Origin: Hyaloraphidium curvatum SAG 235-1
Lineage: Eukaryota > Fungi > Monoblepharomycota
NCBI GenBank assembly: GCA_025558095.1
Contig: JAIVFI010000044.1
Span: 186,001 to 250,000 of the forward strand
DNA: 64,000 nt
Direction: 5' to 3'
The notes under the pieces were generated by a model. It worked only from the letters and a program-made list of their open reading frames with translations, did not search any database and had not been told where the DNA came from. Positions 1 to 11,687 of the stretch are shown in pieces. Position 1 is the first letter of the stretch. Each line of letters opens with the position of its first letter. Made by a program: the position numbers and the translations under genes.

Positions 1-2425
1 GCGTTCGGCAACAGCGAGTGCAGGGGGAGGATATGCAAGGGCTGGATCTGCTCGCGCGGGGTCGAAGACGGCGTCCGCAGAGCCTCTTGCAAAGTCGGGT
101 CGGCGGCGTCCTGGGACTCTTCGTCCTCCTCACCCTCCAGGACCGCGACCTCCTCCTCCGAGTCGTTGCCGTCCTCGCCGCCCGAATCGCTCGCCCCCCC
201 GTCGTCGGCGTCCGCGTCGGCCCTGCCGAGTTCGGCGTCCAGCTGCCCGTCGTCCTCCAAATCCGCATCGTCTTGCACGACGAATCCCTCCCCGCCCTTT
301 ACCCGGTCGCCAGCCTCCTGTTCCTCGAGCGCCTCCCTCTCGCGGTCCAGTATCCTCTTTTTCGGGTACTTTTCCCGCAGCAGCCGGACCAGTTCGTCGA
401 TCTCGGCGCGCCCGGTGAGAAAGACGAGCACCCCGCCCGGCGGCAGCCGCTCGTGGATCTTGCACAGCTTCCGAAAAGCCTCCTTGACGTACGCCCCCGG
501 CCCCGTCGGCGTCACGCGCTGGAAGTGCACGACGACCTTGTACTGTCGCCCTTCGACGTTGACCACTGGCGGCACGCTCTCAAAGAGCGTCCTGTTGCCG
601 GCAACGTCCTGCACCCGGAGCGTGGCGCTCATAATGACCAGCCGCAGCGGCTTCACCCCCGACCGCCTGGCCTGCTCCGAGTTGCGCAGCTTCACGATCC
701 GGGAAAGCCAGCCGATGAGGACGTCGGTCCCGATCGTCCGCTCGTGGGCCTCGTCGAGGATGATGCACGAGTACTGCTTCAACAGCAGGTCGCCGCCCCC
801 CTGCTCCTCGTTGGCGGCGCCGGAAAGCTCCCGGAGGAGGATGCCGTCCGTGACGAACTTGATCCTGGCGTCCCCAATGCCCTCGGACTTGTCGTAGCGC
901 ACCTGGTACCCCACGACCTTCTTTCCGACCTCGCCCATCTCTTCCGTGACGCGCCGTGCGACACCGATCGCGGCGACGCGCCGAGGTTCCGTTACGGTGA
1001 TCCCGCCGCTGAACAAGGGGTGGTCTGGGTTGCCGAAACCAAACTCGTAGAGAATCTGCGGGACCTGCGTGGTCTTGCCGGAGCCCGTCGAGCCGCAGAT
1101 GATGGTGACGGGGTTGTGCAGCACCGCGTCCAAGATGTTGGACTCGTACTGCATGATGGGCAGCTCCTGCCTCGCCAGGCTCATCGCCTCGGTCCGCGGC
1201 ACGTGCTGGATGTACTTGGAGGTCTGCAGGTTCGCGGGCGTGACCTGCTTCGGATCCGCGGTCAAGACCGGAGCGGCCGGGGTTTTGGGCGGCGGGCGCC
1301 AATCCAGGCTATCTGAATCCGAGTCCGAGCCGTCCGGCCTCTTGCCCTGGGCCTCCCTGGCGCGCCGCCGCGCTTCCTTCTGCCTCTTTCGCTGTTCCTG
1401 CCGCTTCCGCGCCTTTTCCTCCAAGAAGGCCTCCTCCTCCCTCTGCCTCTGCTCCGCCACGGCAGCATCAAAGGCGTCGACTTCGGCGGCGGGAGGCGGC
1501 CGCGGTTCAGCGGAAGCGGCCAACGGTGCGCCTTTCGGCTTGAGCGCCGAACCGAAACCGGGCCCCGATGGTGCCATCGTGCCGTCCTTCGGCTTCAATG
1601 AGCTTCCAAAAGCAGGGTTCGCGGACTTGAGGGCGCTTCCAAACTGTGCCGGGGGAAGAGCACCGCGGGACTCCTCGTCCCCGCCATCCGAGTCCGCCCT
1701 GAGGTCCCGTTCGAGGTCCGAGTCCTCGTCGAAATCAGAGTCCATCTCCACCTCGTTGGTGCCGCTGCCGTTCGGCGCCTCCCGCACGCCGTTCTGCGCC
1801 TCCGCGGCCGGGTCGATGCGGTCTCGCAGGGCGTTGGGCCTGCCGAGGAGCTTCGACGACAGGAGGAGGGGCTGGACCGACTTTGACTTCTCGGAGATTT
1901 CGGAAAGCTTGGCCATGATCTGGTTGTGCTCCTTCTTGGCCTCTTGCCGTTTCTGTCCACGGACAAAGTCCGTCAAGCTTCGAAAGACGCTCGTCGGCGA
2001 CGGCGGTAACCCACCACAAACTTTTCGAAGCGCTTCCTCTTCTTCGAAGACATCTTGCCCATACCCGCGGGCCGAGGCGGCTCTGCCTCGGGCCCTTTGG
2101 GGCCCTTTTGCCCCGGGACGAGGACCAAAGGAGCGCTGCCCGAGCTTCCCCGGTATTCGTCCTCCTCTACGAGTCCCTCGAGCTCCAATGGAACTTCGTG
2201 CCGCTCTCCATCGTCGGAATCGCTGTCGGAAGGGGCCGACCGGCCCTTCTTGGAGCTCTGCAAGCCATCTTGGCCGCCCAAGGTTCCCCCGTCCCCGGCC
2301 CGCTTCCGCTTCCGGACCAGCGCCTCGAGGCCCCCATCGCGGGCCTTGGGGTGCGCCTTTGCGTTCTTTACGAGGTGGCTCGACGCGCGCGCCTTGGCGT
2401 TGAAGCGCGGTTGCCGTCGGCCCAT
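1..2425 (-). CDS. DHR1: DEAH-box RNA helicase DHR1/DHX37 (5' part; continues beyond the left edge of the window)
   Basis: Starts MGRRQPRFNAKAR, with one GT..AG intron at ~1956-2014. Helicase motifs: RQELPIMQYE, GSTGSGKTTQVPQ, TEPRRVAA, GYQVRYD, TDGILLRE, IILDEAHER, IMSATL, VLVFLTG, and LHILPLHSLLP at the window edge. The frame is open. Confidence 0.93.
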
Positions 2426-2534
2426 CTGGAGAGGCTCGAAAAGTTGGTTGTTTGTTCGGACCACTGCTCGCTGCCCCTGCCGTTGATAGTGTCGTCCGAG
2501 TTGGGAGGCGTTCAGCTCGGCATATGCGGATGCT

Positions 2535-2562
2535 AGCTTCTCGGCATGTAATCAACGGTATC
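2535..2562. promoter_or_regulatory. 28-bp block (AGCTTCTCGGCATGTAATCAACGGTATC) identical in both copies of the duplicated bidirectional promoter
   Basis: Exact match to 6875-6902, while the surrounding intergenic sequence is diverged. Confidence 0.4.
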
Positions 2563-2735
2563 AATTTTCGGCGAACGGTGGGATGCGAGCCTTTTGCTCA
2601 GGTCGCGAGTGGAGGGCGGGGTGTGCGAAGCGCACCGTCACGCACCTAGCTGCGCGCATCGTCACCCCATAGTAGACCGCTTTGCTGGACTGGGCGCACC
2701 GCCACCCAGCGCGCACATACCTTCATAGTCTCGTC

Positions 2736-3317
2736 ATGGCCGCAACTTTCGAGTTTTCGTGGTCAACGGACGTTCGGCACTTGCCTCAAGGCACTGCGTT
2801 GCAGTCACGGAGCCGTCTTGCTCTGGACTTTGACGTCCGGGCCTTGAATGCGTCGGTTCTCCCGATCCTGGGCGGCGAGATGACAGCGGGGACCGTGTAC
2901 GGCATGCCGCTGGAGCCAACCGAACTTACAACGCCGGGCACAACGTACCTCCTGCGTCAAAGTGCTTTGCCTCAAGGTCCTGAAGCGTACCTCAGGCTGC
3001 TGGCACTTCGGAATCTATTGGAGGACCCTCTCTCCGTCAGCGACCTTCAGCACTGTCTCAAGTTGCTGGTCGGTTTCTCTATGGAGGATTACGGAGCCCG
3101 TGCGCACGAGAGCCAGCAAGCCAAGACGGGCCTTGCCATCTGGGTGGTGGCTGCGGCTCTGTCCCCACTCCTGGTGCTGGCAGCCACGATCATCGCGGTT
3201 CCCGAGGGCGTGATCGGAGCCAAAAGCGTTGCGAGCTTCTTCCTGTTTGCAGTTGGTGGAGCTGGAGTGGCAGCCCTAGGTTTGAGGCAGGTTTGGGGCT
3301 ACCTGCGCCTTTGGTGA
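2736..3317 (+). CDS. Orphan membrane protein (possible beta-grasp-like N-terminus plus 2 C-terminal TM helices), copy A
   Basis: Intronless ORF from ATG 2736 with two hydrophobic C-terminal stretches. Aligns with paralog 7005-7652 through PQGT, RALNAS, PGxTYLL, RLLAL, SFFL and LRQVW. Confidence 0.7.
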   Translation: MAATFEFSWSTDVRHLPQGTALQSRSRLALDFDVRALNASVLPILGGEMTAGTVYGMPLEPTELTTPGTTYLLRQSALPQGPEAYLRLLALRNLLEDPLSVSDLQHCLKLLVGFSMEDYGARAHESQQAKTGLAIWVVAAALSPLLVLAATIIAVPEGVIGAKSVASFFLFAVGGAGVAALGLRQVWGYLRLW

Positions 3318-3428
3318 GATACCTTGGATTCGGTGGATAGAACGGAAATAGATTGGATCCTTTTCGTGCAAAAGCTCGAAACCGAGATTTGGGAAGTGAA
3401 CAACAGCCTCGGCCGCTTTGGGGAGACG

Positions 3429-4229
3429 ATGGCCGACGAACCCCCCGAGCCCTCCGCGCTGGTCCACGTGAGCGGCCTGACTCCAGATTTTGTGCCAGTG
3501 CGGCTGCGCGGCGTGGGCGACGAGGCGGCGCTGCGTGCGGCCGTCGGGCGCGACGCGCGGCTGCCTGCGGCGTATGTCGCGTCTCTGGAGCTGCGACGCG
3601 CGGGCCCGCTGCGGCCGGCCGTGCCGGGCTCCGACGCGGTGTGGGAGACCGCCGAGCCTCTGCCGCCGTGGGGCCGGGCGTTCGCCTGGGCGCTGGCCGG
3701 CACGCACCTCGTGGGCCGCGTGGGCGGCCGCCGCTTCGGACCGCCGCCTTCGCCGCCGCCCATCGCGCCGCAGCGGCCCGACGCCAACAGCCCCATCGTG
3801 TGGGTGATGCTGCGCGAGGGTGTGCGGTGGTGCGCCTTCCGCGTGCCCGTGCGCGGGTGCGTGTGCGGCATGGACATCAAGGCCGCCTTCAGGGAGCAGT
3901 ACGGCCTCGACGCCCGGACGTTCGGCACCCTGGAGCTGCGGTGCGTGGGCTACGAGGCGCCGCCGCTGGACGACCGGGCCCGCGAGGCCGCGTGGCAGGC
4001 CGGCGCACCCGTCGAGGACGACACTCCGTTCCCCGACCGGGCCCGCGGCCTGGACTGGGATTCGCGGCTCATCGCGCGCACGTATCGGCATCCCGTGGGA
4101 CCGGAACACGCAACAGCTGTCCACGGCGGGCTCGCGGAGGTCGCGGCGTCCGCCGCCGCGGCAATCCGATCGTGGGTCGCCCCGCTGTTCGGCACCGCGG
4201 AAGCCGGCATCGATTCGGGTGGTCAATAA
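3429..4229 (+). CDS. Orphan protein with two internal ~90-aa units (possible ubiquitin-like/Crinkler-header-like folds), copy A
   Basis: Intronless ORF MADEPPEPSALVHV.... The two halves share V.V...LELR..G...AW..A.P and are separated by a polyproline linker. The frame is conserved in paralog 7776-8570. Confidence 0.7.
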   Translation: MADEPPEPSALVHVSGLTPDFVPVRLRGVGDEAALRAAVGRDARLPAAYVASLELRRAGPLRPAVPGSDAVWETAEPLPPWGRAFAWALAGTHLVGRVGGRRFGPPPSPPPIAPQRPDANSPIVWVMLREGVRWCAFRVPVRGCVCGMDIKAAFREQYGLDARTFGTLELRCVGYEAPPLDDRAREAAWQAGAPVEDDTPFPDRARGLDWDSRLIARTYRHPVGPEHATAVHGGLAEVAASAAAAIRSWVAPLFGTAEAGIDSGGQ

Positions 4230-4232
4230 CCA

Positions 4233-4512
4233 CACCGGCGTTGCGACGCTCGGCTCTGTGCGTCTCGCGGGGATCTTGTACGGTCTTGTCCCCTCCACAG
4301 TTTCGGATGCACTCTCCGACCCGGCTCCATCCTTTGGCTCGGTTTATACCCTGCGTCATGTATCTCTGGCTCACCGGCGTTGCGACGCTCGGCTCTGTGC
4401 GTCTCGCGGGGATCTTGTACGGTCTTGTCCCCTCCACAGTTTCGGATGCACTCTCCGACCCGGCTCCATCCCTTGGCTCGGTTTATACCCTGCGTCATGT
4501 ATCTCTGGCTCA
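4233..4512. repeat. 139-bp tandem direct repeat, 2 copies
   Basis: CACCGGCGTTGCGACG...TATCTCTGGCT starts at 4233 and again at 4372, with one visible substitution (CCTTTGG vs CCCTTGG). Confidence 0.95.
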
Positions 4513-4559
4513 TCAAATACCACAGTGTGGTGCTTGAATTTGGGGCCGGCCGCGGAAAG

Positions 4560-6752
4560 TCCGTCCCGCGACTCTTCATCCTCCTCACCGTCCAGGACCA
4601 CGACCTCCACCTCCGAGTCGTTGCCGTTCTCGCCGCCCGAATCGCGCGCCTCCCCGTCGTCGGCGTCCGCGTCGGCCCTGCCGAGCTCGGCCTCCAGCCG
4701 GCCGTCGTCCTCCAAATCGGCATCGTCCTGCACGACGAATCCCTCCCCGCCCTTTACCCGGTCGCCGGCCTCCTGTTCCTCGAGCGCCTCCCTCTCCCGG
4801 TCCAGCATCCTCTTTTTGGGGTACTTTTCCCGCAGCAGCCGGACCAGCTCGTCGATCTCGGCGCGCCCGGTAAGAAAGACGAGCACCCCGCCCGCCGGCA
4901 ACCGCTCGCGGATCTTGCACAGCTTCCGAAAGGCCTCCTTGACGTATGAAGTGCACGACGACCTTGTACTGCCGCCCTTCGACGTTGACCACCGGCGGCA
5001 CGTTCTCAAAGAGTGTCCGGTTGCCGGCAAAGTCCTGGACCCGAAGCGTGGCGCTCATGATGACCAGCCGCAGCGGCTTCACCCCCGACCGCCTGGCCTG
5101 CTCCGAGTTGCGCAGCTTCACGATCCGGGAAAGCCAACCGATGAGGACGTCGGTCCTAACCGTCCGCTCGTGGGCCTCGTCGCTGCTTCAGCAGCAGGTC
5201 GCCGCCCCCCTGCTCCTCGTTGGCGGCGCCAGAAAGCTCCCGGAGGAGGATACCGTCCGCGACGAACTTGATCCTGGCGTCCCGGATGCCCTCGGACTTG
5301 TCGTAGCGCACCTGGTACCCGACCACCTTCTTCCCGACCTCGCCCATCTCCTCCGCAACACGCCGTGCGACACCGATCGCGGCGACGCGGGAGGTTCCGT
5401 TACGATGATCCCGCCGCTGAACAAGGGGTGGTCTGGTTGGCGAAACCAAACTCGTAGAGGATCTGCGGGACCTGCGTGGTCTTGCCGGAGCCCGTCGAGC
5501 CGCAGATGATGGTGACGGGGTTGTGCAGCACGGCGTCGAGGATGTTGGACTCGTACTGCATGATGGGCAGCTCCTGCCTCGCTAGGCTCATCGCCTCGGT
5601 CCGCGGAACATGCTGGATGTACTTGGAGGTCTGCAGGTTCGCGGGCGTGACCTGCTTCGGATCCGCGGGCAAAGCCGGAGCGGCCGGCGGTTTGGGCGGC
5701 GGCCGCCAGTCGAGGCTGTCCGAATCCGAGTCCGAGTCGTCCGGCCGCTTGCCCTGGGCCTCCCTGGCGCGCCGCCGCGCTTCCCTCTGTCTCTTTCGCT
5801 GTTCATGCCGCTTCCGCGCCTTTTCCTCCAAGAAGGCCTCCTCCTCCCTCTGCCTATGCTCCGCCACGGCAGTATCAAAGGCGTCCTCCTTGGCGGCGGG
5901 AGGCGGCGCAGGTGCAGCGGCAGCGGCCAACGGTGCGCCTTTCGGCTTGAGCGCCGAACCGAAACCGGGCCCTGACGATGCCATCGTGCCGTCCTTCGGC
6001 TTCAATGCGCTTCCAAAAGCAGGTTTCGCGGACTTGAGGGCGCTTCCAAACTGTGCCGGGGGCGCCGCAGCGACGGCCTCCTCGTCCCCGCCATCCGAGT
6101 CCGCCCCGAGCGCCCGTTCGAGGTCCGAGTCCTCGTCGAAATCAGAGTCCATCTCCACATCGTTGGTGCCGCTGCCGTTCGGCGCCTCCCGCACGCCGTT
6201 CCGCGCCTCCGCGGCCGGGTCGATGCGGTCCCGCAGGGCGTCGGGCCTGCCGAGGAGCTTCGCCTCTTGCCGTTTCTGTTGACCCGCAACGTCCGTCAAG
6301 CTTCGAACGGCGCTCGTCAGCGACGGCGGGGACTCACCACAAACTTTTCGAAGCGCTTCCTCTTCTTCGAAGACATCTTGCCCATACCCGCGGGCCGAGG
6401 CGGCTCTGCCTCGGGCCCTTTGGGCCCCTTTTGGCCCGGAACGAGGATCAACGGAGCGCTGCCCGAGCTCCCCCGGTATTCGTCCTCCTCTGCGAGTCCC
6501 TCGAGCTCCAAAGGAACTTCGTGCCCCTCTCCATCGTCGGAATCGCTGTCGGAAGGGGCCGACCGGCCCTTCTTGGAGCTCTGCAGGCCATCTTGACCGC
6601 CCGAGGTCCCCCCGCCCCCGGCCCGCTTCCGCTTCCGGACCAGCGCTTCGAGGCCCCCATCGCGGGCCTTGGGGTGGGTGCGCCTTTGCGCTCTTTACAA
6701 GGTGGCTCGACGCGCGCGCCTTGGCGTTGAAGCCCGGTTGCCGTCGGCCCAT
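4560..6752 (-). pseudogene. DHR1: Truncated, frameshifted DHR1 duplicate
   Basis: Differences from copy 1: +4 nt at ~6675, deletion of the KKEHNQ...LLSS segment at ~6262, 1-nt losses at ~5390 and ~5438, 17-nt deletion just before DEAH at ~5182, 29-nt net deletion at ~4947. Truncated at ~4560. Confidence 0.9.
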
Positions 6753-7004
6753 GTGCGCGGAGGGTAAAATGTCGGTTGTTTGTCCGAATCGCGGTCGCGG
6801 TCGCGGCCCGTCACCCAGCGATCGCCTCTATGTGCCGTCCGAATTGAGTTGGCAGGCAGCATACCCGGATTATGAGCTTCTCGGCATGTAATCAACGGTA
6901 TCGTCGTGGCAAACGTGGGATGCGAACTTTGTTCACGAGGCGCATCATCACCCCCCGGCGCACCGTCATCGCTTAGAAGACCGTTTCGCAGCGAGTCCAC
7001 CGCC

Positions 7005-7652
7005 ATGGCTTCCGTGACGATAAGGCTCAAGGGGTCAGACGACGTGTGCTACGTGCCTCAAGGCACAGTGAGGCACGTGAGGCGGCGGATGGCGCTCGAC
7101 AACGACATCGGACTCGGACTCCGGGCCCTCAACGCTTCCTTTGCCCCGATCCTTGCGGTGACTCCTGAGGGGATCCAGCATGGCCCGTCCCTTGCAGAGA
7201 GCGAAGTCATGGCACCGGGTAACACATACTTGCTTTGGGAAGATGAGGAAGCTCCAGCACGAGACGTGCTCCTGCAAAGGCTTCTTGCGTTGCAAGATCT
7301 CCTGGAGGAAGAACCAATCTCAAACCCTGAACTCCGCAAATGTCTGAGATGGCACGTGGCACTTTCGATTCGCGTCTACGAGCTTCAAATGGACCTCAAG
7401 AAGCAGGAGTCCGACGGCGGCTTCTGGAGCCTGCTTGCTGTGGTCTGCGCTCTTCTGCTGGCAGTAGCAGCGGTCATTACGCCACCTGACATTATGAGTG
7501 GATCCAGAGGCACGATAAGCTTCTTCCTGACCGTGCTTGGTGCGGTTGGAGCTGTGGTCCTGGCATTGCGCCAGGTTTGGCTGCACTGGGCTGGCTGGAA
7601 GCAGCATTGGACGTCATTGGCGGCTGCATTGCGACGCCTGTGGGGTTACTGA
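7005..7652 (+). CDS. Orphan membrane protein, copy B (paralog of 2736-3317)
   Basis: Intronless ORF MASVTIRLKGSDDV... with two TM segments and motifs shared with copy A. Confidence 0.7.
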   Translation: MASVTIRLKGSDDVCYVPQGTVRHVRRRMALDNDIGLGLRALNASFAPILAVTPEGIQHGPSLAESEVMAPGNTYLLWEDEEAPARDVLLQRLLALQDLLEEEPISNPELRKCLRWHVALSIRVYELQMDLKKQESDGGFWSLLAVVCALLLAVAAVITPPDIMSGSRGTISFFLTVLGAVGAVVLALRQVWLHWAGWKQHWTSLAAALRRLWGY

Positions 7653-7775
7653 CCTTGGCGAGACATCTTAGAAATTGCGCTTTCTTTGGGAAATAGATCT
7701 TCTTGTCTTCTGAGTTCTGGGCCTGATTGGTTTGCGCTGGCGTTGCTACGCAGCTCGACGTAAACAGGGAAGGCC

Positions 7776-8570
7776 ATGGCCGACGAGGCCCCCGAGCCCT
7801 CCGCGCTGGTCCACGTGCACGGCCAAACACCGGATTTTGTGCCCGTGCGGCTCCGCGGCGTTGACGACGAGGCGACGCTCCGTACGGCCGCCGGGCGCGC
7901 CGCGCGGCTGTACGCGGACGAGACGGAGTCCCTGGAGCTGCGATGCGCGGGGCCGCTGCGGCCGGTCGTGCCAGGCTCCGACGCGGTGTGGGAAACCGCC
8001 GAGCCGCTGCCACTGTGGGGCCTCTCCGAAGCGCTGGCCGGGACGCACATCGTGGGCCGCGTGGGCGGCCGCCGCCGCGGCCCTCCGCCGCCGCCGCCGC
8101 CCATCGCCCCGCAGCGGCCCGACGCCAGCGGCCCCATCGTGTGGGTGATGCTGCGCGAGGGCGTGTGGTGGTGCGCCTACCGTGTCCCTGTGCGCGGGTG
8201 CGTGTGCGGCAGGGACATCAAGGCCGCGTTCAGGGAGCAGTGTGGGCTCGACGCCCGGACGTTCGGCACCCTGGAGCTGCGGTGCGTGGGCTACGAGGCG
8301 CCGCCGCTGGACGACCGGGCCCGCGAGGCCGCGTGGCAGGCCGGCGCACCCGTCGAGGACGACACTCCGTTCCCCGACCGGGGCCGCGGCCTGGACTGGG
8401 ATTCGCGGCTCATCGCGCGCACGTATCGGCATCCCGTGGGACCGGAAGACGCAACAGCTGTCCACGGCGGGCTCGCGGAGGTCGCGGCGTCCGCCGCCGC
8501 GGCAATCCGATCGTGGGTCGCCCCGCTGTTCGGCACTGCGGAAGCCGGCATTGATTCGGGCGGTCAATGA
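7776..8570 (+). CDS. Two-unit orphan protein, copy B (paralog of 3429-4229)
   Basis: Intact 264-aa ORF; the C-terminal ~100 aa are nearly identical to copy A. Confidence 0.7.
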   Translation: MADEAPEPSALVHVHGQTPDFVPVRLRGVDDEATLRTAAGRAARLYADETESLELRCAGPLRPVVPGSDAVWETAEPLPLWGLSEALAGTHIVGRVGGRRRGPPPPPPPIAPQRPDASGPIVWVMLREGVWWCAYRVPVRGCVCGRDIKAAFREQCGLDARTFGTLELRCVGYEAPPLDDRAREAAWQAGAPVEDDTPFPDRGRGLDWDSRLIARTYRHPVGPEDATAVHGGLAEVAASAAAAIRSWVAPLFGTAEAGIDSGGQ

Positions 8571-8739
8571 CGACGCCGGCTTCCGATGCTCGACGCTGTG
8601 TGTCTCGCACGGGTCTTGTGCGCTTTTGCGCCCTCGGCACAGTCTCGTTACTCATTCGGACTCGGAAGGTCGCATACATCCTGTATCTCTGGTTCGTTGA
8701 ATACCATAGTGTGGTGCATGAGAATTGCGACCCGGTAGT

Positions 8740-9660: not shown

Positions 9661-9747
9661 GACCTAATCGACAACGTCAGAAGTGTAAAACGGTGCCAGA
9701 ACAGAGAGAACGCACGGGAACTGGCCCGCTCGATCGTCGGGTTTGAT

Positions 9748-11275
9748 CTAGTTCTCGTTCTCCCAGAGCGAGGCGGCACCCATCTGGAGTCGGAAACAGG
9801 TCAAGGACCGTCCAAACGAGCGCGAAACGAGCAATACAGACCCCAGTCCCGATGCACATGGAGGTGACGCCCAGCTTCCCGCCGGTCCTCTTGAGCGTCT
9901 CGAACAGGGTCGAGATCTGCCTCGCCCCGGTGGCGCCGAGCGGGTGGCCGATGGCGATGGCGCCGCCCTTGGGGTTGACCTTCTTGGGGTCGATCCCGAC
10001 CGTCTCGACCGACATGATGGCCTGCGACGCGAAGGCCTCGTTGATCTCGTACGAGTCCACGTCGTCCTTGGTCACGCCGGCCTTGGCGAGGACCTCGGGG
10101 ATGGCGTAGCTGGAAGGCGGTCGCTGTGAGCGCCGCGCAGGCGGCTCCGGAAGCGAGAAGCGACTCACGCAGGCCCGATGCCCATGACGCGGGGGGGCAC
10201 GCCGGCGACGGCGAACGCGACGAGCTTGCCGATGATGGGCAGGCCGAGCTTCTCGGCCACCGAGCGGCGGGCGAGCAGCGCGGCGCCGGCGCCGTCGGAG
10301 ACCTGCGACGAGTTGCCGGCGGTCGAGGCGCCGTCGGGGGTGAAGGCCGGGCGGAGCTTGGCGAGGCCCTCGGCGGTGGTGGGGCGAACGCCGTCGTCGC
10401 GGTCGGCGACGACCTTGCTGCCGTCCTCCTTGGTGATGGTGATAGGGATGATCTCCTTGTTGAAGTAGCCGGCCTTCTGGGCGGCCAGGGCCTTGTTGTA
10501 CGAGTCGAGCGCAAAGGCGTCCTGCTTGGCGCGGTCGACCTTGTAGTCCTTGGCGACGTTCTCCGAGGTGATGCTGTGGGAGATTGCGGAGTCAACTTCC
10601 ATGTGCCGGGTACGGTAACTCGGCGCCGCCACCCACCCCATGGGCAGCAGGCAGTCCTGGATCGACCCGGCCTTCTCGACCCAGTTCCTGGGCGGCGGCA
10701 CGGGCTTGCCCACGTCCTGGCCCATCGACTCCATCCCGGCGCCGATGCCGATGTCGATGGTGCCGGCCTTGATCTCGCCGGCGATGTTGGCGATGGCCTG
10801 CAGGCCCGACGAGCACTGCCTGTTGACGGCGAGGATCGAGGTCTCGACGGGGAAGCCGGCCTGGAGCATGGCCATGCGGACGAGGCCGGCGCCGGCGCCG
10901 GGGAGGCGCACGTTGCCGACGTGGATGTCCTTGACGAGCTTCTTGTCCAGGCCGACCTTGTCGCACACGGCGGCCAGGATGGGGGCGAGGATCTCCTCGG
11001 GGTGCACGCCCTGGAAGGCTGTGGGGCGGAGCGAGTGAGCCTCCGTCCGGGGGGCAGGACCGCGCACGACGCACCGCCGCCCTTGGAGCGGGTGATGGCC
11101 GAGCGGTAGGCCGAGACGAGCACGACGTCGTCGGGCGACTTGACGCCGATCTTGCCCTGTTTGGCCGGGCGGGTGAGCGTTGCGGGTGGGGCTGGGTCGC
11201 CGCGGAGGAACGCACAAAGGTCGGGGCGGAGCCACCGGCGAGGTGCGAAGCGACCTGTTCGACGCGCGAGGCCAT
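9748..11275 (-). CDS. POT1: Peroxisomal 3-ketoacyl-CoA thiolase
   Basis: Five GT-AG introns. Motifs NRQCSSGLQAI, TAGNSSQVSDGA, EINEAFASQ, GGAIAIGHPLGATGAR, MCIGTGMG. N-terminal PTS2 RVEQVASHL. Confidence 0.95.
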
Positions 11276-11687
11276 CTTTGTGCGGGATGCGGCGGCTGGA
11301 TGGCGCGCGGGGGGGCGTGGCGGCGCGGGTGACAGAACGGCGGAGCGTCGCGGCGGGGCGGCGGGCGGGGGTCAGCGCCGGCTGGGGGGGCGCGGGTACC
11401 TTCCGGCAGGCTCAGAGGAGCCGGGAATGCGGTGCTCACCGGTGCGGCGGGGGAGGACGCGGTGCCTGGTTCGGTCGGAAGTGGAGCCGAAAACGAAGGG
11501 CAGTACTTGGAACTTCCGCGCACGTGAAGAGACCCCATCGCGCAACATGCGCGACATCCGGCTTCCTGAGCATTGGCAATGGCATCCAACATACAGAACT
11601 AGCTTCAGCGATCTAGGTATTCACATCCGGTCCCCAATCCGGTCCCCGTCCGGCGAATGGCGCATGGAGACGCCGCAGCTTCGCGTT

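Follow-up and report, generated by a model that had tools for sequence, protein, structure and literature searches.

Mosaic divergence in a tandemly duplicated pair of genes with predicted ubiquitin-like folds from Hyaloraphidium curvatum

Introduction

Why are the two copies of one gene only 38% identical in amino acid sequence when those of its immediate neighbour, duplicated together with it, are 88% identical? The question is posed by a locus of the aquatic fungus Hyaloraphidium curvatum SAG 235-1 (Monoblepharomycota) that occupies positions 2,736-8,570 of the window, the 64,000-nt stretch of DNA analysed here (GCA_025558095.1, contig JAIVFI010000044.1, forward-strand positions 186,001-250,000), to which all coordinates refer. 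An earlier note on this DNA gave the positions of the two gene pairs and their contrast in similarity, both of which are reproduced here, and attributed the contrast to strong diversifying selection or to the joining of two old haplotypes. Using one assembly (55 contigs) and one RNA run, which constitute the data for H. curvatum, we favour, with a probability of roughly 0.55, the reading that two versions of a lineage-specific gene pair, diverged long ago, lie side by side here and that their contrast stems from age and not from selection.

Results

Extent of the tandem duplication

The duplicated unit measures ~4.3 kb, and the duplication comprises a truncated DHR1 copy, a pair of 2-TM ORFs (TM_A and TM_B) and a pair of partner ORFs (P_A and P_B), distributed over copies A and B as follows (Ubl, ubiquitin-like).

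1-2464, minus strand: 5' part of DHR1 in copy A, with the N-terminal region and the start of the helicase core, continuing left of the window in long open frames (translation; GC3 0.86)
2396-2735, no strand: DHR1 start to TM_A start, left edge of the old core, where identity to copy B falls from 97% to ~70% with many indels
2736-3317, plus strand: TM_A, 193 aa, with a predicted N-terminal Ubl domain (residues 1-75, pLDDT 92), a helical linker and, at the C-terminus, two TM helices that form a hairpin (comparison and model)
2867-2947, minus strand: intron (GTAAGT...CAG) within the TM_A ORF, antisense to it (RNA contig joint 2866>2948)
3262-3322, minus strand: second intron of the TM_A antisense transcript, across the TM_A stop codon (joint 3261>3323)
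3429-4229, plus strand: P_A, 266 aa, with two predicted Ubl domains (residues 9-100 and 122-217), followed by a disordered tail that contains one helix (comparison and model)
3900-4229, plus strand: probable gene-conversion tract between P_A and P_B (97-99% identity, dS 0.044, more diverged DNA on both sides)
4233-4510, no strand: 139-bp unit present twice in tandem (99% identity), just 5' of the duplication junction
4537-4562, no strand: junction of the tandem duplication, where the right flank of copy A is fused to a point inside DHR1 (sequence comparison)
4562-6752, minus strand: DHR1 pseudogene of copy B, cut off in the helicase core, with five frame-breaking indels (dS to copy A 0.145, omega 0.28)
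7005-7652, plus strand: TM_B, 215 aa, with the architecture of TM_A (38% identical)
7595-7653, minus strand: intron of the TM_B antisense transcript (RNA joint 7594>7654, CT..AC ends)
7776-8570, plus strand: P_B, 264 aa (88% identical to P_A)
8571-8721, no strand: right flank of copy B, 77-84% identical to copy A, reaching the right edge of the duplicated unit (alignment)

By blastn and MAFFT, positions 107-2600 of copy A correspond to 4562-6935 of copy B (the DHR1 5' part, on the minus strand, 91-98% identical per 100 bp), and 3420-4305 correspond to 7767-8647; between 2600-3420 and 6935-7767 blastn returns no alignment. The right edge of the duplication lies at ~4537/8721, beyond its earlier description.

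Copy B begins abruptly inside DHR1 and no RNA contig covers the junction (4450-4649), as would be seen if the tandem arrangement were an assembly artefact with the two haplotypes of a heterozygous diploid placed serially. This is very improbable: besides being truncated at 4562, the DHR1 of copy B is disrupted by five indels that break the frame, the largest of 29 bp (deletions of 29, 17, 1 and 1 bp and an insertion of 4 bp), which would hardly be expected in one allele of an essential gene; the junction region possesses a 139-bp tandem repeat and a homologous flank of its own; and the assembly consists of only 55 contigs. Copy B of DHR1 is thus a true pseudogene, as previously proposed, but not one of the same age as the neighbouring TM genes, its dS of 0.145 standing against at least 1.2 in these.

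Two proteins with predicted ubiquitin-like folds

Structure prediction suggests that both genes encode ubiquitin-like folds, the first a Ubl domain followed by helices and a TM hairpin and the second two Ubl domains in series. The ORFs of TM_A and TM_B are both open and share ~38-39% of their residues (E 3e-30) at ~55% DNA identity; in a six-frame comparison the plus frame is by far the best conserved, and third codon positions are the least conserved in the alignment. Hydropathy reveals two hydrophobic segments per protein, within residues 129-183 of TM_A and 136-193 of TM_B, so that the description of the intervening genes as intact 2-TM ORFs with some 35-40% amino acid identity is upheld. 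The TM_A model places helices at 133-153 and 162-192, with low pLDDT; as in hairpin- or tail-anchored proteins, the N-terminus does not look like a signal peptide and the hydrophobic helices lie at the extreme C-terminus. Structure matches of the N-terminus are ubiquitin-type domains, with a TM-score of 0.6-0.7 (by target), and a search of the ESM Atlas by shape yields generic beta-grasp domains only; the search by features gives uninformative scores (<0.8).

The Ubl fold of the partner is predicted with a pLDDT of ~90, and the best PDB matches of its model in Foldseek are ISG15, the Ubl domains of USP7 and di-ubiquitin (E 7e-5 to 1e-3). Among ten aligned partner paralogues the C-termini are unconserved, with no conserved Gly-Gly directly after the last strand, which makes conjugation unlikely; the GG of P_A and P_B stands at the end of a 45-residue disordered tail (...SGGQ), an ending that is not shared among the paralogues. 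The high similarity of the partner pair noted earlier holds overall but is not uniform, identity rising from 80% in the first Ubl domain to 94% in the second and 98% in the tail.

Sequence searches add little to these models. Pfam gives nothing above noise for the four proteins, the ten paralogues or the outside relatives, and no HET, NLR, PFD or other known incompatibility domain is found by Pfam in the four proteins; a PDB sequence profile search yields chance-level matches only. Profile-profile comparison detects no relation between the TM and partner families, so that their Ubl domains are not demonstrably homologous at the sequence level. Co-folding of TM_A with P_A gave a score of 0.00, which, obtained without controls, is evidence neither way.

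A lineage-specific family of linked genes

TM-type genes were found at four loci by profile and, more weakly, at two others, in every case immediately 5' of a partner gene and in the same orientation. The architecture recurs beside partner genes at the loci C7, C32, C21 and C33, with the C32 gene confirmed by hhalign (E 2.8e-6). Several such cassettes exist in the genome, mostly near contig ends, and TM_A and TM_B resemble one another (~39% identity) more than either resembles any other copy (at most 30%). The partner family numbers ~15-20 copies, several of which have no neighbouring TM gene; the suggestion of a two-gene system therefore stands insofar as every TM-type gene found adjoins a partner, but the partner also occurs alone.

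The pair of Ubl domains is restricted to this lineage: a search of 1.84 billion representative proteins with the partner profile produced 13 matches, among which two-domain proteins occur only in H. curvatum, and a word-index protein search matched only H. curvatum's own proteins. Single-unit eukaryotic relatives (P0008 and P0010-P0016) share the second-unit motif FPD..GL..G..VGR with E-values of 3e-9 to 5e-4; their contigs carry eukaryotic genes such as Las1, PRELI, zf-MYND and peptidase S10, and no TM gene was called beside them.

Transcripts and gene models

All three spliced joints over the TM ORFs have CT..AC ends and hence represent minus-strand GT-AG introns, antisense to the ORFs. The RNA contigs contain no sense-strand RNA for the TM ORFs, the sole strand-informative RNA evidence being antisense to both. 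At copy A, the antisense transcript continues into the DHR1 start codon and, when its spliced form was joined (solely for ORF listing), shows no long ORF ahead of that codon; at copy B, it runs from the TM_B/P_B spacer through TM_B to the 5' end of the pseudogene. In the P_B region, an RNA contig starts at 7765, beside adapter sequence.

These joints, together with a TM GC3 of 0.66 that is atypically low (DHR1 and partner, 0.86-0.88) and public gene models that are inconsistent with one another, would suit a situation in which the TM ORFs are not expressed genes and the real product is the spliced minus-strand RNA, either a long DHR1 leader or a non-coding antisense transcript. We regard this as highly doubtful, considering that 193 and 215 codons have stayed open in the same frame at ~55% DNA identity, that the proteins match at E 3e-30 with the plus frame far ahead of the others, that the TM architecture lies beside a partner at C7, C32, C21 and C33, and that the Ubl fold is confidently predicted; moreover, antisense RNA is compatible with sense mRNA under other conditions.

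Public models P0001, P0006 and P0007 fuse the TM and partner ORFs into one spliced gene. This reading is unsupported: splice points are non-homologous between the loci, the P0001 intron differs from the RNA intron, and the intron of P0003 is a minus-strand one, that model reading the joint 7594>7654 on the wrong strand. The antisense-only RNA joints, the TM GC3 of 0.66 and the partner copies without a TM gene are observations that count against an age-mosaic account.

Silent-site divergence and the age mosaic

Silent sites decide between selection and age. In the TM gene dS is saturated (1.2-1.5 by counting methods, 11 by ML) and third-position identity is 0.445 overall, dropping to the chance level of 0.28 in the linker. 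Non-coding DNA at the gene is equally diverged, with ~70% identity in the promoter and 44% in the spacer between TM and partner. dN/dS is 0.35-0.68 per domain and omega exceeds 1 in no domain; the TM gene thus evolves under purifying selection, and the view that both orphan pairs are selectively maintained is strengthened by ORFs that remain intact despite saturated divergence.

Because silent sites are saturated and the non-coding DNA is as diverged, the proposal of strong diversifying selection after a recent duplication loses its support. It could draw on the intact ORFs and on a TM protein that evolves faster than the partner throughout the family (~3.5x), but dS is at least 1.2, omega is 0.35-0.68 in every domain, and promoter and spacer are as diverged as the gene or more; saturated dS in the TM gene is what the earlier note had named as telling against it. 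With only two sequences to compare, episodic positive selection is possible, yet it cannot explain silent and non-coding divergence, and diversifying selection as the cause is scarcely credible. RIP-like mutation or a locally raised mutation rate was likewise rejected for the TM divergence, as the effect is confined to the core and DNA 3' of the partner is ~20% diverged.

The old core spans ~1.3 kb, from 2396 to ~3700, and includes the promoter, the TM gene, the spacer and the partner's first domain. Identity drops toward the TM gene and spacer from both sides, sharply on the left, at the DHR1 start, and gradually on the right. Partner dS decreases from 0.28-0.53 in the first third to 0.17-0.5 in the middle third and 0.044 in the last, and the non-coding DNA 3' of the partner is only ~80% identical between copies, so that the locus is a mosaic of at least three to four age classes. 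Relative to the C7 cassette, whose frameshifted partner copy was joined with X at the break for distances only, the A-B split has a depth of 0.67 for the TM gene, ~0.5 for the first partner Ubl domain and ~0.13 for the second. The dispersed pair C21/C33 has the same mosaic (TM dS 0.82-0.93, spacer 44-52% identical, partner dS 0.20), which suggests that the partner block is repeatedly recombined or converted as a property of the family.

Could the divergence be allelic in origin? A young duplication might have arisen by unequal illegitimate crossover between homologues with anciently diverged TM alleles (a balanced polymorphism of the recognition-locus type), DHR1 being broken on one of them, and the divergence peak would then be a footprint of balancing selection. 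Divergence indeed climbs toward the TM gene from both sides. The two DHR1 copies (~94% DNA identity) differ evenly along their length, as a single age class, with an overall omega of 0.28 (0.19 within the helicase core) and a non-synonymous share of 0.43 against the 0.55-0.6 expected under a pseudogene-only history (P about 0.003-0.016); these even differences and the non-synonymous deficit are more readily explained if two functional alleles were joined late than if an old pseudogene had been subject to conversion over a long time. Diploidy, too, is reported for Monoblepharidomycota (PMC9457484, whose main text does not give the ploidy of strain SAG 235-1). However, the non-allelic pair C21/C33 has the same mosaic, making alleles unnecessary as an explanation, the left drop at the DHR1 start is sharp and not graded, and mutation hotspots at GC-rich third positions might account for part of the non-synonymous deficit. 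We therefore consider such a crossover unlikely, if still a serious contender. The joining of two old haplotypes, as raised in the earlier note, agrees with the mosaic and with the DHR1 deficit, but the mosaic of C21/C33 points to gene conversion. Both the single age class of DHR1 and its too few non-synonymous differences count against an age-mosaic account.

Recent duplication of the whole unit, followed by ectopic replacement of one copy's core from another cassette of the family, would be in keeping with the presence of several cassettes, mostly near contig ends, and with the conversion tract in the 3' part of the partner. There is, however, no donor in the assembly, where TM_A and TM_B are mutually closest (39% versus at most 30%); on the left the diverged core ends within the DHR1 promoter, an element absent from the other cassettes, and the right boundary is graded, leaving core replacement decidedly improbable.

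Discussion

Under the favoured reading of two long-diverged versions of one gene pair, the first gene would encode a Ubl domain on a helical stalk, anchored in the membrane by a C-terminal two-helix hairpin, and the second a soluble protein with two Ubl domains. The ~1.3-kb core would have kept its old divergence under purifying selection, while recombination or gene conversion would afterwards have homogenised the DNA on either side, which comprises the DHR1 fragment on the left and, on the right, the 3' two-thirds of the partner and the flank downstream of it. The two products, one a membrane-anchored Ubl protein and the other a di-Ubl protein, may form a cognate pair on the cytosolic face of the membrane, with the partner's first domain possibly being the part that matches the TM protein.

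A more far-reaching idea, which we consider a long shot, is that the core represents a balanced polymorphism of long standing, in a self/non-self or killer/antidote system that consists of ubiquitin folds only: a variable membrane Ubl protein would be recognised by the co-diverging first Ubl domain of its linked di-Ubl partner, the tandem would stem from two joined incompatible haplotypes, and the mostly subtelomeric family would serve as a reservoir of specificities.

The identity contrast of neighbouring duplicated genes can thus mimic diversifying selection, where here the silent-site test identifies an age mosaic from recombination. This is a previously undescribed family of small genes with predicted ubiquitin folds in an early-diverging fungus, characterised by adjacent pairs, enrichment near contig ends, a very fast-evolving membrane-anchored member and a soluble member that is repeatedly homogenised. 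Elsewhere, families with these features are frequently involved in recognition or genetic conflict, and the present one provides concrete loci for tests in a group with almost nothing known of recognition or conflict systems.

Comparison with known systems

The two serial beta-grasp domains predicted for the partner resemble ISG15, di-ubiquitin and the USP7 Ubl domains, but identity in the structural alignments is only 9-14%, the partner has no Pfam match and a conserved C-terminal Gly-Gly is lacking. The single-unit relatives P0008 and P0010-P0016 have the second-unit motif in common with it, but consist of one unit only.

The header of Crinkler/CR effectors is also described as a Ubl fold (Zhang et al. 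2016, as reviewed in PMC5289972). Like it, the present proteins have small units with a predicted Ubl fold and a conserved last strand, and both belong to expanded, fast-evolving families in zoosporic fungi; the conserved hydrophobic strand motif LELRxAG may correspond to the LxLFLAK of the header, as judged by eye. Unlike Crinklers, the present proteins carry no toxin or enzyme domain C-terminal to their Ubl units, and these are distributed over separate adjacent genes, one of which encodes a membrane-anchored protein. The Crinkler header profile PF20147 matches neither P_A and P_B nor eight paralogues and the outside relatives (E up to 1-10); searched genome-wide with E up to 1, it also finds nothing, a blank that is weak evidence because 14 control genomes are equally blank.

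The wtf genes of fission yeast are poison-antidote meiotic drivers in which both products come from one gene and have more TM helices. As small, fast-evolving membrane proteins that are multi-copy, shaped by gene conversion and often tandemly duplicated they recall the TM genes, but they have no sequence or fold relation to the TM or partner genes.

Finally, fungal het loci and plant S-loci likewise combine two linked genes with extreme divergence of one version pair, which is highest at one gene and declines to either side of it, and both versions are kept intact. In the present case Pfam detects no HET, NLR or comparable recognition domain, and both versions lie in tandem in one genome.

Architecture of the duplicated locus

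The tandem duplication recognized in the earlier note, together with the contrast in identity between its neighbouring ORF pairs (38% vs 88%), is borne out by direct-repeat search, blastn and global alignment. Within a region of 63-66% G+C, positions 107-2600 of the left copy (A) correspond to 4562-6935 of the right copy (B), and 3420-4305 to 7767-8647, with an additional homologous piece extending the duplication to 4537/8721. The elements of the locus and its surroundings are:

107-2600 and 4562-6935, minus strand: 5' portion of the helicase gene DHR1, forming the left part of the duplication
2736-3317 (TM_A) and 7005-7652 (TM_B), plus strand: ORFs with an N-terminal ubiquitin-like (Ubl) domain and two C-terminal hydrophobic segments each
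3429-4229 (P_A) and 7776-8570 (P_B), plus strand: partner ORFs with two Ubl domains, 88% identical
4233-4510: 139-bp unit in two tandem copies of 99% identity, immediately ahead of the duplication junction
9677-11592, minus strand: thiolase-like gene that switches frame near 10165, probably through an intron

In copy A, long open frames of DHR1 go on leftwards beyond the window; copy B ends at 4562, carries deletions of 29, 17, 1 and 1 bp as well as a 4-bp insertion, and is a real pseudogene. The TM ORFs sit between the aligned blocks and are left unaligned by blastn, their proteins being 38% identical (E 3e-30). As judged from the probable intron of the thiolase-like gene, the genome has spliced genes alongside the intronless cassette formed by TM and partner genes.

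Coding status and transcription

In a six-frame comparison of the two TM regions, the + frame of the ORFs clearly outscores every other, with a summed E of ~1e-27 vs 2e-10 for its antisense shadow, and the same + frame is the sole one to match the paralogue on contig C7. Identity of the pair at codon positions 1, 2 and 3 is 60%, 62% and 44.5%, which is the profile of constrained coding sequence, and the N-terminal 75 residues have a predicted fold with pLDDT 92. Third-position G+C is 0.65-0.67 in the TM ORFs, compared to 0.86-0.88 in DHR1 and the partner.

One public sequencing run, which contains 65% of the sampled words and is evidently RNA (spliced contigs, adapter remnants), yields contigs that match both cassettes with zero mismatches; both versions are therefore present in that sample. 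The three joints over the TM ORFs (2866>2948, 3261>3323 and 7594>7654) are all CT..AC, that is, canonical minus-strand introns. Spliced RNA antisense to TM_A (window 2377-3524, minus strand, two introns) is devoid of a long ORF and reaches the start codon of DHR1; the simplest reading makes it an extended DHR1 5' leader of ~950 nt. A weaker, similar RNA of copy B runs into the pseudogene. Another contig begins at 7765, 11 bases upstream of the P_B start codon. Contigs do not reveal the strand of unspliced RNA, and these are therefore compatible with both the presence and the absence of sense transcripts from the TM and partner genes. The public gene models at these loci look like artefacts: P0001 (2880-4229), P0006 (C21) and P0007 (C7) fuse TM and partner ORFs by way of introns whose positions are not homologous; P0003 (7005-7697) takes an intron of the minus strand for one of the plus strand.

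Divergence reflects age

The TM pair has a dN of 0.54 and a dS of 1.2-1.5 by counting methods and 11 by maximum likelihood, so that its synonymous sites are saturated; third positions of the helical linker agree at the rate expected by chance (0.28 vs 0.277). Saturation of dS, an outcome that the earlier note had itself named as speaking against its preferred reading of strong diversifying selection on the TM gene, combines with omega values of 0.35 for the Ubl domain and 0.68 for the TM hairpin, and with equally diverged non-coding DNA, to leave that reading unsupported. Between the DHR1 and TM starts, the non-coding sequence is ~70% identical and rich in indels; in the spacer that separates TM gene and partner, identity between the copies is 44%. 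Along the partner, dS is 0.28-0.53 in the first third, 0.17-0.5 in the middle and 0.044 in the last third, before identity falls back to ~80% in the non-coding DNA past the stop codon; the partner's 3' part is thus probably a recent conversion tract. With DHR1 and its pseudogene at a dS of 0.145, at least four age classes coexist, and the divergence of the locus reflects age, not adaptive change.

Age classes at the locus
~0.04: 3' part of the partner
~0.15-0.23: DHR1 and right flank
~0.3-0.5: promoter and first domain of the partner
saturated: TM gene and spacer

Relative to the distance to the C7 cassette, the A-B distance is 0.67 for the TM protein, ~0.5 for the first Ubl domain of the partner and ~0.13 for the second. 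Identity to the C7 copy is 27% for the TM protein vs 64% for the partner and, family-wide, the TM protein evolves ~3.5 times faster than the partner; this faster evolution and the youth of the partner's 3' two-thirds account for the contrast between the two ORF pairs.

Origin of the mosaic

The main rival explanation, an unequal crossover between balanced haplotypes, would have joined two functional alleles late. It draws on the omega of DHR1 vs its pseudogene (0.28, and 0.19 in the helicase core), on the even distribution of differences over the DHR1 part, and on a non-synonymous share of single differences of 0.43, vs the 0.55-0.6 expected had copy B always been a pseudogene (deficit test, P 0.003-0.016 at kappa 2-4). 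However, cassettes on the separate contigs C21 and C33 show the same pattern, which favours conversion between paralogues as a general process: their TM genes have a dS of 0.82-0.93 (53-60% amino-acid identity) and their spacers are 44-52% identical, whereas a sharp switch where the partner starts brings dS down to 0.20 (84% amino-acid identity). Because this dispersed pair repeats the mosaic, old versions with recurrent exchange in their flanks tentatively rank first, ahead of the balanced-haplotype crossover. The two dispersed cassettes lie at 2998-4683 of stretch L022 (C21) and 3150-4661 of stretch L021 (C33), the TM gene of the latter being frameshifted.

Family, linkage and genomic placement

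A partner profile built from ten paralogues has 23 matches in the assembly (31.9 Mb, 55 contigs) and 13 among 1.84 billion representative proteins. The two-domain proteins among these 13 are exclusively from H. curvatum; eight relatives with a single unit were recovered on metagenome or sequencing-run contigs, and the two of these contigs that were inspected both carry eukaryotic genes.

Co-occurrence of the two genes holds in one direction. Every match to the TM-family profile, at four loci (C44 twice, C7 and C32), is directly upstream of a partner on the same strand, and at C21 and C33 this place is taken by a more distantly related gene with matching architecture. But partner copies on C26 (two), C15 and C1 stand without a neighbour of the TM type or of a second type, found on C30 and C40. 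There, a conserved ORF of 113 residues that lacks a TM segment (70% identity between the two contigs), Ubl-like as judged by eye only, takes the TM gene's place upstream of the partner. The C30 stretch (L019) also has a 680-residue reverse-transcriptase-like ORF on the opposite strand.

The third cassette (C7:154000-162000, local positions 3494-7115) includes a partner copy that changes frame near 4791, followed by an ORF (5701-6474) that has two TM segments at its C-terminus, and then by another small ORF. Four further loci (L028 3194-4164 on C38, L032 3465-4386 on C20, L033 3040-4317 on C10 and L029 2588-5482 on C30) have neighbouring small genes that consist of single family units: two hold Ubl + Ubl pairs, at one a Ubl gene has a multi-TM ORF after it, and at one kinase-like ORFs come next. 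Eleven of 16 independent family loci are <100 kb from a contig end, against an expectation of 0.33 of loci (P 0.004), suggesting a subtelomeric bias.

Predicted proteins and comparison with known systems

The predicted partner consists of beta-grasp domains in tandem (residues 9-100 and 122-217, pLDDT ~85-93) plus a disordered tail. The TM protein is modelled with a beta-grasp domain at its N-terminus, long helices, and a pair of hydrophobic helices at its C-terminus. Neither has a Pfam family, and family-to-family profile comparison detects no relation between the two. In this model the hairpin holds the Ubl domain of the TM protein at a membrane, hence probably on the cytosolic side. Binding between this protein and its soluble di-Ubl partner is a tentative and rather doubtful proposition; the matching surface would be the partner's first domain, which has the TM gene's old divergence in common. 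A recognition or poison-antidote role for the gene pair is speculation.

Among PDB structures, the best matches to the predicted partner are ISG15, di-ubiquitin and the Ubl domains of USP7, and the modelled N-terminus of the TM protein resembles ubiquitin-type domains in both the PDB and the ESM Atlas. The Crinkler header model has no match in these proteins, and the effector domain that follows the Ubl units of Crinklers is absent here. The likeness to Crinklers does not go beyond fold and layout.
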